The position numbers were made by a program, and so were the translations under genes. The notes under the pieces were generated by a model, which was not told the origin of the DNA, searched no databases, and worked only from the letters and a program-made list of their open reading frames with translations. Positions 46,171-64,000 of a DNA stretch of 64,000 nucleotides are shown piece after piece. Each line of letters begins with the position of its first letter. The stretch's first letter is position 1. The stretch lies in sequence record LC819005.1; one strand, given 5' to 3'.

Positions 46171-47175
46171 TCATGAATGCTTGCGTTCCAACTCTTCAAT
46201 CGCAAACTTTTCATGCAAGAGAACTGGCAGCGTGACATGCGAGAGCGTTTGCTGCTTACGCTTCAAGGTCAGGTTGGGCGAGGCGATCAACCGGTTCTTG
46301 ACCTCGTCAATGTACTCGTACACCCGCTGCAGACACGGGAAAGCAATCGTGGTCTTGCGATGCTTGTAGAGACAGTGCTCGCTGTAGGACTTGTTGTTGC
46401 AGAACGTCGAGACATGCATGGTGACGGTCTTGTCCTCGTGGATATGAGCCACATAGCGCAGCGTCAGACGACGCTCCGGACAGCACTCATAACCGAAGTA
46501 CAGATTAAGCTCAATGAGCTCTTTGTCATCCCGCGCATACTCGTCAGCCCAGTTCATCTTTTCGAGTCCAGCCAGGTCAATGATGTCCTGAACAAACTCG
46601 AACTTCAGATGCTTCTGGTAATTCGGGTTGGTCTTAAGCTTTAATGCCTCACCCAAATACTGACTGCATGCATCCAAGTCTTGCATACTTGGATTATCAA
46701 ATCGTGCGATATTCGAGTTGTCGATCGCTGTTTCGATCGCCACCTTGATCGCTGCGTAGTCTTGCACCACGCGTTCAATATAAGCGTCGTACGGCTCACC
46801 ATCAACCCGTGCCAGCGCTTCGGCCGTGCTCATGAGAGCGGGGGAGACCATATAGTCATCCACCAAGGACCGAGGCGTCAGTCCCAACTCACGACCGTTT
46901 TGAATCACCTTGCCGAGCAGCGTCGCACACAAACCGTGAACGGTAGAAGCCCGCTCAGCAGTTCGCAGCACGTGCTGGATATAGGCATGACCCGTGAGGT
47001 CTTTTCTGCCCATATGGACGATATACGCAAGTTCCAAACAGGTGTTGCGAAGATCCAGTAGGAAACGCTCCGTATTGCGCGCTGTTTTATGCGATTCCTG
47101 CGCTTTCGTTTTCAGCGTTTGCAAGGCCGCGTGCTGTTTCTCCAGTGGAGTCTTCTTTACATCCGAGAGCATCAT
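46171..47175 (-). CDS. HD-domain (RelA/SpoT-hydrolase-like) protein, degenerate active site, with C-terminal extension
   Basis: RKDLTGHAYIQHVLR and GEPYDAYIERV...DNSNIARF match small HD hydrolases, but ALLHDVVED appears as TLLGKVIQ. Confidence 0.65.
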   Translation of the reverse strand: MMLSDVKKTPLEKQHAALQTLKTKAQESHKTARNTERFLLDLRNTCLELAYIVHMGRKDLTGHAYIQHVLRTAERASTVHGLCATLLGKVIQNGRELGLTPRSLVDDYMVSPALMSTAEALARVDGEPYDAYIERVVQDYAAIKVAIETAIDNSNIARFDNPSMQDLDACSQYLGEALKLKTNPNYQKHLKFEFVQDIIDLAGLEKMNWADEYARDDKELIELNLYFGYECCPERRLTLRYVAHIHEDKTVTMHVSTFCNNKSYSEHCLYKHRKTTIAFPCLQRVYEYIDEVKNRLIASPNLTLKRKQQTLSHVTLPVLLHEKFAIEELERKHS

Positions 47176-48122: not shown

Positions 48123-49037
48123 TCAGTCCTTCGGATACACTTCTTTGTTGAACGCAAGGAACGTATTCAACTGTGCGCGGGCGACTTCCACCGCGCCCGA
48201 CCAGATCACCTGATAAGCGCGATCCAGATGCTCCCACGCCTTGAGACCGCGCACACGGTGCTGATCCTGCGAGTCCCAGGAGTAATTCATCGTCATGTGC
48301 ACCGACGTCTTGTAGATGCCGTAGATCGTATCGGCCATGGCGTCCGGCTTGTTGACCAGATGATGCACGATCACCTGCGCCGGGTCGATATCCGGCAGCG
48401 AACGGAACAATTCGCTGTGCTTCTCGAAGTCACCCAGGAAACGGGTCACAGCCGAGCGTACCTGGTCTCCCTGGACGATCGTGAACAGGCGTGCGACTTC
48501 ACTGATGATCGACGGGATGCGCACTTGGATATACGCGTCCTGGTCACCGACCCACAACGCGAAACGCAGATACACGTCCCAGTTCAGCTCCGTGTTCAGA
48601 CGCTTCACCACGATCGCGCTTTCGAAGTGCACGCCGGTTTCGTTCTCGGCTCGCTTCTGCCGCACGAAGTCTTCCATGATGATCAGCAGTTCCTCGACCG
48701 GCCGTGGATCTTTCACCAGTCGATTCGGCAACTGCAGGCCGTGGGGTGCCAGTTGCTTCTGGATGTAGTTCTCCACCCGATGGAGTGTATGCAGGAAGTT
48801 ATCCCGCTCATACATCGCGTTGTAGATCACCGTGCCCGGTTCTTCGGACAGATTCAAGGTAATCCAGCGATCGTGATTCAGACCGCTGTTGAGTGCTGCC
48901 GTGCGCAAGCCCTTCGCTGCGCTGTAATGCTTCTGCGTCGATGGCGCGCTGAAGAGGGATTGCACTTTGACCGAATAGCCAAAGCCCAATGCTTGTTCCA
49001 GGAAATCCTGGAGGGAGAGAGTCGTCACGGCTTCCAT
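48123..49037 (-). CDS. Hypothetical protein (304 aa)
   Basis: GAAGGA RBS before ATG at 49037. Confidence 0.75.
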   Translation of the reverse strand: MEAVTTLSLQDFLEQALGFGYSVKVQSLFSAPSTQKHYSAAKGLRTAALNSGLNHDRWITLNLSEEPGTVIYNAMYERDNFLHTLHRVENYIQKQLAPHGLQLPNRLVKDPRPVEELLIIMEDFVRQKRAENETGVHFESAIVVKRLNTELNWDVYLRFALWVGDQDAYIQVRIPSIISEVARLFTIVQGDQVRSAVTRFLGDFEKHSELFRSLPDIDPAQVIVHHLVNKPDAMADTIYGIYKTSVHMTMNYSWDSQDQHRVRGLKAWEHLDRAYQVIWSGAVEVARAQLNTFLAFNKEVYPKD

Positions 49038-49109
49038 GTCATCCTTCTGATTATTCGGGGTGGCTTTTCTAATAACACTCAATCTGAATGTGAGTAGAAA
49101 AACGAAAAA

Positions 49110-49720
49110 AATAAATAGCACATTGCCCACCCTCTAACCACTCGGTCTTACTCTAGCCGCTTCGCGAAGTAGCTAGTGTCAAGTGAGTGCGTTGGGGCGG
49201 GCGTATGCCTTTCTTTGAGTGACGCGGATCTCTCAGCAAATCTCCTAGTGGCATTCCATCGGTTCCAGATTGATGGCGCGGGCTAGGTCTCAGTGCTTAT
49301 TGAGTTCTCTGTCAAAGACACCACACAGGCGTCTGTTTCTCGATTCTGGTAGCGTGTACTTACCAGGCTTGAGGGCTCGTCAGTTCCCTCAATATGACGC
49401 CAGTTGTCCGACGTACGCAAGTATGTCTGCAATCGGAGAGCCAGCGTGAGCGACGGCATGTAAGAGCCAAGTAAGTGAAGATCAGCTACTTTTCACTGTA
49501 GGTGTTAGCCCTGTTCCTAGCGACTCGCGTCGTTAAGGAACCCATTTTACGCAGGTGCTCATGCTGCGCGGAATGTAGGCGATGCAAACGAGCATCAGAC
49601 CACGGGTTGAACGTTAGGTCCAATACCCGCGTGAAAAGAGGAGATCTCCAGAAACCCCAGCTCAAGTACCGCAAGAAGCTAGCGTAACCGTAGATTTTTT
49701 GTTCTCCTTATTTGGTTCTA
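49110..49720 (-). ncRNA. Candidate large structured ncRNA (about 550-600 nt), family not recognised
   Basis: No credible ORF; more than 10 hairpins; G.U pairs mostly favour the minus strand; GCGA tetraloop; ends in a long hairpin plus T-tract. Confidence 0.55.
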
Positions 49721-49757
49721 TAAAAATGGAAAGAGCTGTAAATTCTTACAGCTTACC

Positions 49758-50006
49758 TTATTCCGGCTTCTGATTCCGAATGCACTCGTCCCGAGCACGC
49801 TCGAAACGTTCGGTGCGCCACTGATTCAGAAGCAGGTCCACGTTAGTCGTGGACGGCGCAACCGCAGGAGGCGGCGAAGGCGGGACAGCCTCCACCACCT
49901 CCCAGACAACCGGCGCCGGCTTGAGACGCTGCTCACGCGATTGGCGAGCTTGCAGCGATTCAGAGGTCGTTGTAATACGAGACACTGGCGAGAGGCTTAT
50001 GGTCAT
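49758..50006 (-). CDS. Small hypothetical protein
   Basis: 82 aa, followed by the hairpin AGCTGTAA-gaat-TTACAGCT; overlaps the upstream ORF. Confidence 0.45.
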   Translation of the reverse strand: MTISLSPVSRITTTSESLQARQSREQRLKPAPVVWEVVEAVPPSPPPAVAPSTTNVDLLLNQWRTERFERARDECIRNQKPE

Positions 50007-58670: not shown

Positions 58671-58757
58671 GTCTCCTAAATTGGGGGTGTGATAAATAAC
58701 CCTCGGAGTAAGAAGTTGACAGCATAAAAGCCGGTTTCCCGGCTCCGATGCTTTATC

Positions 58758-58827
58758 TGCGTAGGATGGGAATCGAACCCACTCTTTCGGGTCGTAACCG
58801 ACGTTATGCCAATCTACTACCTGACGC
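58758..58827 (-). tRNA. tRNA-Arg(ACG), atypical, possibly a pseudo-tRNA
   Basis: T arm GTGGG-TTCGATT-CCCAT; anticodon arm TCGG-TTACGAC-CCGA; D-loop TTGG; acceptor GCGT(C)AGG/CCTACGC with a bulge; no encoded CCA. Confidence 0.7.
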
Positions 58828-59001
58828 AGTTACAACGGACGTTACCGGCATTTCCAACCCCGAGCTGATACTGAGACCCTAGGTTAAGAAAGTAACTAGC
58901 AGCGGAATTACTGCTACAAAATGCAATGACGGTGTATTAAAACAAATTACTATAGACAAGAGGTGTACTCTCTACCACCCTGACTTTTTATAAGGTCGTT
59001 T

Positions 59002-62717: not shown

Positions 62718-63332
62718 TTATGCCGCCTGATCGATTCGATCCAGCAGCTTGGTGCTCCAGGGAGGCACGAAAGCGTCAGCAGACGCCTTGCGCGAAGTCC
62801 GGCTGATCGCACCCACCAGGATCTTGGCTTTCATGTCCTGCGGGTACGTGAACCGGGTCGGATGTCGATCGTCATCGAGCACTTCCGTAAAGCCCCGAAG
62901 GGTGCAGTTGTACTCGAATCCGATTGTTTCGGTAAAGCGGCGTCGACGGCCGTCGTAACACAGCGCGATCTCTCGCACGCTCGTGGTATAGAGCTTACGG
63001 GCGACGATGTCTCCGTCGTTCACAATCAGCCACGGTTGAATGGACCGCAGCAGCATGGCGAAGAGGTCGAGGCTGCCGAAATGGCAAGCCGCACGACTTT
63101 CATACACCCAGTGATTACCCTTGTTCTCCTTGACGCGCCATCCCCAGGTCTCGAACGGATCAGCGACCGACGACAGCATCGTACGCAGCGTCGAGCTGTT
63201 ACGCGAGCCGATCAGTGAGATCGACTCAGGCGGAGTGACAATGCCGTACAGATCATCCAGCATGGCGATGGTGCTCGCAGGAGCGGACTTCCGTACTTTA
63301 AGCCGGGTGGCTATGCCTTCATAAGCACTCAT
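62718..63332 (-). CDS. Hypothetical protein, paralogue 1
   Basis: 204 aa; first gene after the promoter-like motif at 63367. Confidence 0.78.
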   Translation of the reverse strand: MSAYEGIATRLKVRKSAPASTIAMLDDLYGIVTPPESISLIGSRNSSTLRTMLSSVADPFETWGWRVKENKGNHWVYESRAACHFGSLDLFAMLLRSIQPWLIVNDGDIVARKLYTTSVREIALCYDGRRRRFTETIGFEYNCTLRGFTEVLDDDRHPTRFTYPQDMKAKILVGAISRTSRKASADAFVPPWSTKLLDRIDQAA

Positions 63333-63366
63333 TCAGAAATCTCTTCAGTTGGGTTAATTCACAGTT

Positions 63367-63383
63367 GTAATGTAAGCTCAAAG
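63367..63383 (-). promoter_or_regulatory. Possible early promoter (variant)
   Basis: Minus strand CTTTGAGCTTACATTAC with an AT-rich upstream region. Confidence 0.4.
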
Positions 63384-63446
63384 AAATCTTCAAATCAATT
63401 TCGCTAAGGGTATAAACCGACCGAGCTTACGTCCATAGAATTTTAG

Positions 63447-63484
63447 CGGCATAAAAAAGTGGGGGAGGGCCAATGCCCTCCCCC
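63447..63484 (-). terminator. Terminator closing the candidate large ncRNA
   Basis: Minus strand GGGGGAGGGC-attg-GCCCTCCCCC followed by ACTTTTTTATGCCG. Confidence 0.85.
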
Positions 63485-64000
63485 GTAGTGTATTGTCACC
63501 TATGGACGCTCCACCAAACGCCATAAGATCCAACCCGCAAACAAACTACCACAGCACGAACGACGCCTCTAGACTTTAGTGAGCGCGGGGAGGGGATACG
63601 GGCCCATCTACCTATCTTACCCCTCCCCACCGCCTCGGCCAGGTCACCATCAAACCTGGGCAAAGAGTGGCGATGCCCACTCACTACCTCCAGTGTTCTC
63701 CGCGCATAAATGCACATTGGGTCAGCTCCCAACTCACTGAAGGAACTACGCTCGTTCTAACGTAGCTTTGCTTTTTACCGCATACCAAGATAGCGGTGTT
63801 GACCTCTCCTCGTTCACTTGGGCTTTCGAGGTTTCGCAATACCATATCCTTCTCGGGATAGGCTGGTGCTGCATGAGGTAGAGACAGGCTGCCGTACAAC
63901 GACTTGCACATTTTCCCTACGCTGCTGCTACCCAGGCTACCCTTCTAAACCAGGCACACAACCATTGCATGGCTGCGCCGGTTCATCTACGTTTGACTTT
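63485..64000 (-). ncRNA. Candidate large ornate ncRNA (at least 510 nt; 5' end beyond the window)
   Basis: No credible CDS; many hairpins and nested long-range helices, with G.U wobbles that consistently favour the minus strand. Confidence 0.62.

Follow-up and report, generated by a model that had tools for sequence, protein, structure and literature searches.

A candidate structured RNA family joined to a predicted small non-AUG gene in an annotation gap of a Ralstonia jumbo phage

The window analysed here, a stretch of 64,000 nucleotides, is 100% identical to Ralstonia phage FLC1-1B (LC819005.1), and its positions are obtained by subtracting 62000 from the record coordinates. A second phage, FLC4-3B, is 98.6% identical to the region; both are 290-kb jumbo phages related to RP12 and RP31. 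Jumbo phages of the PhiKZ group have attracted much study because they form a nucleus-like compartment and possess RNA polymerases of their own, and to our knowledge almost nothing has been reported on non-coding RNAs in this group. RP12 and RP31 belong to the PhiKZ group, and their replication is independent of the host RNA polymerase (PMC11530567, PMC5468394). In the deposited annotation, 720 nt are left empty between gp101 (49758-49985, minus strand) and gp100 (48123-49037, minus strand), and these two genes as well as every gene downstream for more than 15 kb are located on the minus strand.

A first-pass annotation of the sequence had described this gap as hairpin-dense, free of ORFs and bounded by terminator-like hairpins. 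The gap itself and both boundary hairpins (49734-49753 and 49118-49208) were recovered in our analysis. On the minus strand, the 631-nt island folds with -213.7 kcal/mol compared to -185.9 +/- 5.8 kcal/mol in shuffled sequences (z = -4.80), and the plus strand gives z = -4.19; a z-score near zero had been named as the outcome that would speak against the element. Since boundary hairpins were found and folding is far better than in shuffled sequences, the hairpin-rich, terminator-bounded island is real and exceeds chance. The description as ORF-free, in contrast, was wrong: the 62-aa ORF at 49486..49674 extends upstream to 49695 and is part of a conserved 69-codon frame with purifying selection at the protein level. 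The following features were assigned, from 5' to 3' on the minus strand:

49734..49753, minus strand: upstream hairpin, found by terminator scan, which ends gp101 and marks the 5' boundary
49713..49726, minus strand: T-rich stretch TTTTTATAGAACCA, conserved in five lineages and reading TTTTATGAACCA, ATTTTGTACCA or TTATTTGACCA in relatives
49702..49709, minus strand: perfect Shine-Dalgarno sequence AAGGAGAA, 6 nt upstream of the AUC
49486..49695, minus strand: predicted small gene of 69 codons with AUC start at 49695-49693 and TAG stop at 49488-49486
49514-49540, minus strand: conserved GNRA-capped hairpin within the small ORF
49355..49479, minus strand: subdomain D1, closed by long-range helix P1 (49467-49476 with 49358-49367), with helix P3, hairpin P4 and an invariant single strand of 18 nt inside it
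49410..49434, minus strand: 25-nt hairpin block in D1, identical in four of five lineages and unique in the window
49208..49357, minus strand: subdomain D2, a hairpin with UGUGU loop (49316-49334) followed by a multi-branch domain
49105..49211, minus strand: subdomain D3, a terminal hairpin of about 91 nt (49118-49208) followed by a U-tract (49105-49117)

Homologous loci were detected by several routes. Sensitive blastn revealed a 55-nt match in RP12 and RP31, in a gap left without annotation at the corresponding position, and the alignment of the whole gaps of FLC and RP12 gave patchy but clear homology from end to end, including the 25-nt block, which is identical in both. A scan of public viral contigs for this block returned only RP12 and the 283-kb viral contig UViG_3300049460_000312 (UViG in the following). 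Exact scans with the 25-mer and a 20-mer gave one chance match inside a GST-like coding sequence among metagenome contigs and no match among genome contigs. Searches with the gp100 and gp98 proteins, after which the contigs were fetched, added three further lineages, L011, L017 and the distant L018, each with a gap of 0.66-1.07 kb in the gene calls at the equivalent position. The element is syntenic in FLC, RP12/RP31, UViG, L011, L017 and L018; these are six lineages, about five of them independent, and the covariation tallies given below count cells and not events. Protein identity of gp98 to FLC decreases from UViG (82%) over L011 (70%), L017 (61%) and RP12 (48%) to L018 (32%). No homologues of gp100 or gp98 were found outside this clade, and because both proteins are confined to it, the sister phages RSL2 and RSF1 are without a syntenic locus. 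A paralogue of the element was not found in 143 kb, neither by blastn nor with three covariance models.

Some observations concern the annotation of these relatives. The gap in RP12 comprises 939 nt, and its upstream part of about 200 nt (L003:4351-4550) aligns, by eye, with the coding region of FLC gp101; therefore, RP12 probably carries an unannotated gp101 homologue. In RP31, a 95-aa ORF103 on the plus strand spans the element (L004:3776-4063), whereas RP12, identical over the element, has no such ORF in its annotation. ORF103 is probably a false gene call, since its frame is not conserved in the other lineages. The gp98 gene (46171-47175) shows a weak match to metal-dependent (HD-type) phosphohydrolases, namely to phrog_990 with E = 2e-6 and to a likewise annotated tblastn match.

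At the 5' boundary, the upper stem and tetraloop of the upstream hairpin (GTAA-GAAW-TTAC) are kept in five lineages (alignments A6 and A8). The hairpin is followed by TTTTATGAACC in UViG and L011 and by TTTTTATAGAACC in FLC. No second copy of its 12-mer was found in the window, and the conserved GTAAGAAWTTAC was rejected as a general promoter or terminator motif because it does not recur. The TTTTATG at the T-rich stretch matches a junction that recurs in this phage, a hairpin followed by TTTTATGCYG, and it also fits the T-3 A T G+1 pattern of late promoters in PhiKZ (PMC7598289). The T-rich stretch may be a restart promoter with the transcription start. No sigma-70 promoters were detected by scan. 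A GC-rich hairpin followed by TTTTATGCYG was found seven times in the window versus 0.12 expected, and the motif scan placed the copies as follows:

16649, 23147, 44839, 48113 and 59783, plus strand: junction motif TTTTATGCYG
58729 and 63456, minus strand: junction motif TTTTATGCYG

This junction motif seems to unite an intrinsic terminator with a restart promoter of the PhiKZ TATG type, and it would be used throughout the phage. At the 3' end of the element, the arms GCCCGCCCC and GGGTGGGC (49125-49202) belong to the 91-nt hairpin at 49118-49208, which runs directly into the T-run TATTTATTTTTTT at 49105-49117. Such a stable hairpin directly followed by a U-tract, with a stem kept by compensatory changes, is probably an intrinsic (Rho-independent) terminator, which a simple terminator scanner misses owing to its long, branched loop. 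In RP12 and L017, the standard junction motif of the phage, TTATGCCG, comes after the terminal hairpin. UViG and L011 carry an extra gene between the terminator of the element and the gp100 homologue (L012:4590-4988, 132 aa, and L011:4650-4979, 109 aa), which FLC and RP12 do not have; its 132-aa product matches phrog_2315 of unknown function. Because of this additional gene, the element is not tied to gp100. From the boundary hairpins, the junction motifs and this independence from gp100, we infer that the element forms a self-contained transcription unit.

The strand call had been left uncertain in the first-pass annotation. This doubt was fair, since the RNAalifold scores of the two strands are about equal. 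The 76 pairs that the predictions for both strands have in common carry 26 Watson-Crick double changes, and in these pairs the cells that can pair only on the minus strand (G-U) outnumber those that can pair only on the plus strand by 15 vs 3, which favours the minus strand. The ORF, the Shine-Dalgarno sequence, the U-tract and the orientation of all neighbouring genes agree with it.

The 3' two-thirds of the element (49488..49105, about 380 nt) contain stops in every frame and indels that do not come in threes, and covariation supports their folding as a non-coding structured RNA. For the analysis this region was split in three, a covariance model was built for each part, and pairs were counted on the model-based alignments. 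In the case of D1 (model R1, alignment A10), 32 pairs with 97.8% of cells paired were obtained, and 20 of the 32 are compensatory compared to 2-4 in slid controls, with none of 500 shuffles as high; the alignment includes one spurious partial match of L017, which covers no more than the invariant hairpin and a part of P3. D2 (model R2, alignment A14) comprises 31 pairs with 87.5% paired, 16 of them compensatory versus 1-7 in slid controls and again 0 of 500 shuffles reaching this value. D3 has 20 basal pairs (95% paired), of which five are compensatory versus 0-1 in slid controls, and G-U cells outnumber A-C cells by 13 to 1. The comparison with homologues that had been proposed along with the first description thus gave compensatory pairs above the controls in all three subdomains.

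Single helices illustrate this pattern. P1 joins segments about 100 nt apart and occurs in three versions, ACTTACYTGG/CCTGGTAAGT, TCTTTCCAG/CTGGAAAGA and ATCTCACTCAG/CTGAGTGAGAT. In D2, the CTGTGTG sequence with its UGUGU loop does not differ between any of the six lineages, L018 among them, whereas the stem of this hairpin varies. Model R1 did not detect D1 in L018, even with filters turned off. Invariant stretches in the 3' domain reach 18-25 nt. Within the 25-nt block, L011 differs at one base, a U to C change in the ACAUAC loop, which would turn a G-U into a G-C pair in a possible kissing contact between ACAUAC and UGUGU; this is one one-sided change. Further covarying long-range helices or pseudoknots were not found in the element, where the only candidates are invariant and covariation cannot show, and inspection by eye revealed no conserved anti-Shine-Dalgarno sequence within it. 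Most of the stems listed initially carry compensatory changes in relatives, namely CGCAG/CTGCG, the GNRA hairpin TTCCT...GCGA...AGGAA, GAGGG/CCCTC, AGACGCC/GGTGTCT, CCTAG/CTAGG, CCATC/GATGG and the terminal hairpin. Two others are not conserved: GATGC/GCATC is absent from relatives, and CTGGTA/TACCAG competes with the covarying long-range helix P1.

In the comparison of FLC with L011 and UViG, D1-D3 show 85-92% identity, the small ORF 72-73%, gp100 67-75% and gp98 71-78%. Given this difference between the RNA domain on the one side and the ORF and the two genes (67-78%) on the other, D1-D3 are the slowest-evolving sequence of the neighbourhood. This bears on the explanation that the locus is an ordinary small protein gene with a long folded 3' UTR acting only in cis, as terminator, block to exonucleases or translation control. 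The folded domain does lie directly 3' of the ORF and ends in a terminator hairpin, and in the fold prediction the start codon is possibly part-paired with downstream sequence. However, a 3' UTR of this kind would be better conserved than the ORF it serves (85-92% vs 72-73%), a mere stability element would have no need of stretches of 18-25 nt and a UGUGU loop that do not vary, and the other terminators of this phage are short GC hairpins. We consider a purely cis-acting 3' UTR unlikely.

The 5' third of the element has the properties of a protein-coding gene: an open frame, indels in multiples of three, an excess of synonymous changes and a ribosome-binding site, with the canonical start missing in five lineages. 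The frame is open in FLC, L011, UViG, L017 and RP12. AGGAGAA is found in five of six lineages, 5-6 nt ahead of the start codon, which is AUC in four lineages, AUU in L017 and AUG only in the most distant L018. Earlier, a TAAGGAG near 49706 had been noticed as lacking a start codon at normal spacing; the conserved AUC 6 nt downstream opens the 69-codon frame. FLC has an in-frame TAA four codons upstream of the AUC. No ATG, GTG or TTG occurs in the upstream open stretch of FLC, L011, UViG and L017, and RP12 has one GTG 12 codons upstream of the start, where the FLC frame is closed by the stop. Length differences between anchors within the ORF (+6, -3, -9, +3) are all multiples of three, whereas those 3' of the stop include five changes of +-1 as well as 4 and 8. 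In-frame pN/pS (Nei-Gojobori) amounts to 0.38 for FLC-L011, 0.51 for FLC-UViG and 0.36 for L011-UViG, with Fisher p of 2e-5, 3e-3 and 3e-4, respectively, compared to 1.2-1.6 in the other two frames of the identical alignments; RNA covariation in this region could skew the substitution patterns there. In L018, a 106-codon ORF with a normal ATG is located at the matching place and ends in the shared ARER..RHSE motif (hhalign E = 1.7e-4). By this comparative evidence the 5' third is a real small gene, which gene callers missed because it has no canonical start.

The predicted protein, 67-106 codons long across the lineages, is basic and rich in arginine and histidine with an aromatic-rich N-terminus (IYGYASFLRYLSWGFWR), and arginine is kept through AGA, AGG and CGT codons (alignment A3, by eye). 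No homologue of the small protein or the short ORFs was found in Pfam and PHROGs, where the neighbouring genes match only families of unknown function, and the small protein gave none in a word-indexed search of 5.8 billion proteins or in a profile HMM search of 1.84 billion representative proteins. AlphaFold2 on an alignment of five sequences predicts an all-helical structure with a pLDDT of 60, which is weak and insufficient for a fold search. A point against its translation is that AUC is a very poor initiator in model bacteria. The combination of a strong ribosome-binding site with a weak start codon (AUC or AUU) would lead to low or regulated translation. In L017, the small ORF (L017:5147-5431) begins with AUU, and its usual stop is absent due to a 2-nt difference, so that the frame reads 27 codons further through helix P1 and the invariant D1 hairpin. 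This may be either a real extension or an assembly error; unless it is the latter, the readthrough into D1 would be odd if D1 must stay folded.

Folding continues through the coding part. RNAalifold on the codon-based alignment of the ORF region gave 52 pairs with 90% of cells paired, and 11 of the pairs are compensatory compared to 0-4 in slid controls and 3.9 +/- 1.5 in shuffles. For example, CGCAG/CTGCG changes to CGCGG/CCGCG, and the TTCCT...AGGAA hairpin becomes TCTCTG...CAGAGA and CGCTGGC...GCCAGCG while the tetraloop remains GNRA (GCGA or GUGA).

These observations have to be weighed for the interpretation of the first-pass annotation, a pure large non-coding RNA that is independently transcribed, with the open frame and the Shine-Dalgarno-like sequence as untranslated by-products of RNA constraint. 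Much of it agrees with our results: a terminator-bounded structured RNA with covariation in six lineages, better conserved than the neighbouring genes and without an Rfam family. The canonical start codon is absent in five lineages, the ORF contains covarying hairpins throughout as well as a conserved GNRA loop, and the protein searches returned no homologue, as such an RNA would lead one to expect. The coding 5' third, however, does not fit. The synonymous excess is confined to one frame, all indels in the ORF are multiples of three, arginine is kept through differing codons, the spacing of the Shine-Dalgarno sequence is conserved and a distant homologue uses ATG, and we regard a purely non-coding RNA as quite unlikely. 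Conversely, translation of the 62-aa ORF at 49486..49674 had been put forward as something that might account for the whole region. The frame is real, with purifying selection acting in the 5' third, but it does not explain the region, since the 3' part of about 380 nt is non-coding and the best-conserved part.

The interpretation that we favour, tentatively and with a little less than even confidence, is a two-part minus-strand transcript in which a weakly translated small basic protein and a large functional RNA domain work together as an RNA-protein particle. The self-contained minus-strand unit would give a heavily folded RNA of about 600 nt. Its 5' third would be translated at a low or regulated level from the AUC or AUU behind the strong ribosome-binding site, and the 3' part of about 380 nt would fold into three subdomains ending in the long terminator hairpin and is probably the main functional part. 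The RNA domain is favoured as the main player and the protein as its partner, because the RNA is more conserved and contains invariant unpaired sequences and conserved tetraloops. The folded RNA may bind a particular partner, of which the simplest candidate is the small basic protein whose gene lies just upstream, and the two would form the particle. Dosage tuning is suspected because the strong Shine-Dalgarno sequence is paired with a weak start codon (the reverse is found in L018), and the weak start may balance the amounts of protein and RNA. The unit would then work as a dual-function RNA and not as a plain mRNA or a plain non-coding RNA; both coding-level and RNA-level selection are supported by the comparison of sequences.

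A more far-reaching proposal, possible in our opinion but doubtful, is that the element represents a novel class of large, structured RNAs confined to PhiKZ-like jumbo phages, with a core of about 380 nt (about 600 nt with the mRNA part), which would act as a ribozyme or as scaffold of an RNA-protein complex with a defined three-dimensional fold and a partner translated in cis from a non-AUG codon. A defined three-dimensional architecture is hinted at by the GNRA tetraloops, the possible ACAUAC/UGUGU loop kissing and the invariant single strands.

The invariant single-stranded and loop sequences also suggest sequence-specific recognition, as would be expected if the 3' domain were cut out and acted in trans without the help of the small protein, as a regulator of or decoy for an RNA or protein of host or phage, for instance in host takeover or anti-defence; the surroundings of the unit, a series of small genes without known function as is typical of host-takeover regions, point in the same direction. 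We consider a processed trans-acting RNA of this kind improbable, because we identified no target, a complement of the 25-mer occurs nowhere else in the window, and the sequence shows no evident processing site. Control of gp100 by the element as a long leader or attenuator is very improbable, although gp100 follows on the same strand after about 70 nt and a hairpin resembling a terminator stands at the end of the element, since a different gene of 132 or 109 aa intervenes in UViG and L011 and the standard terminator/restart motif separates both in RP12 and L017. That the element functions as DNA, for instance as an origin of replication, as a packaging site or as an array of protein-binding sites, is hardly credible. 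Both strands folding about equally well in silico would speak for it, but G-U cells are in excess on one strand in the helices common to both predictions, the 5' third carries a coding signal, and the locus has no GC-skew switch, repeats or paralogues.

A second unannotated gap of about 1 kb is located between gp125 and gp126, from 63264 to 64000 in the window and on to position 126303 of the record (L007:1265-2304), 1 kb away from a cluster of four tRNA genes. Of this gap, 755 nt are 73.8% identical to an unannotated stretch in RP12, so that it is better conserved with RP12 than the 49-kb element. It gave no Rfam match and no sequence similarity to the 49-kb element, and it is probably another conserved non-coding RNA. 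The RNA-gene cluster suggested for this region gains some support from the second gap, which has no annotation and matches RP12 with 74% identity over 755 nt. The two elements share no sequence.

The locus offers a compact and well-delimited candidate for study, combining an RNA family with strong covariation and a small gene missed by every annotation pipeline. It raises the questions whether non-AUG initiation is regulated in these phages, whether large folded RNAs take part in infection and whether a protein-RNA particle is formed. The 'empty' gaps of jumbo-phage genomes can hide both kinds of genes at once, and conservation is also seen in the second gap, at a distance of 14 kb.

To compare the element with known RNAs, all 4227 models of Rfam 15 were searched, so that any models for GOLLD, ROOL, OLE, HEARO, RNase P, 6S RNA, group I/II introns and riboswitches were included. 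No match at the gathering score was obtained for the whole window, the island gave only three chance-level matches of 13-19 bits at E <= 10, and the homologous loci L003, L011, L017 and L018 gave nothing at the element at E <= 5. This outcome of the cmscan proposed at the outset, without a family match in any lineage, fits a novel RNA. A group I intron was ruled out, as there is no match to RF00028, the element lies between complete genes and the neighbours vary among lineages. A type I toxin-antitoxin system of the hok/sok kind was likewise rejected, as the protein is basic without an uninterrupted hydrophobic stretch and no conserved antisense ORF or promoter was found. With tmRNA, the element shares a structured RNA that holds a reading frame without AUG; its ORF, however, has a Shine-Dalgarno sequence and is far longer than a tag peptide, and tmRNA was ruled out since ARAGORN finds no tmRNA or tRNA-like domain, only a tRNA-Arg at 58757-58828 in the window.

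Regulated non-AUG initiation is exemplified by infC, whose AUU start is read out by IF3. The conserved AUY start behind a good ribosome-binding site resembles this case and suggests a deliberately weak or regulated start; the ORF has no homology to infC. RNAs that combine a coding and a structured regulatory part are known with RNAIII/hld of S. aureus and SgrS/SgrT of E. coli. Like these, the element would be a transcript of a few hundred nt with a small ORF and a conserved multi-hairpin domain, in which the RNA part is better conserved than the peptide; unlike them, it is phage-encoded, its ORF comprises 67-106 codons with an AUC or AUU start, and no relationship by sequence or Rfam is seen. 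GOLLD and ROOL are large structured non-coding RNAs linked to phages, and Rfam holds models of both. The element is similar to them in its several hundred nt, its multi-domain structure supported by covariation and its occurrence in phage genomes with tRNA genes in the region, but it has no Rfam match, contains an ORF predicted to be translated where GOLLD and ROOL have none, and belongs to a jumbo phage of Betaproteobacteria. Judged from its sequence and that of its relatives, the element appears as an RNA family absent from Rfam and joined to an unannotated non-AUG gene, akin in kind to the dual-function RNAs and to GOLLD and ROOL and a member of neither.
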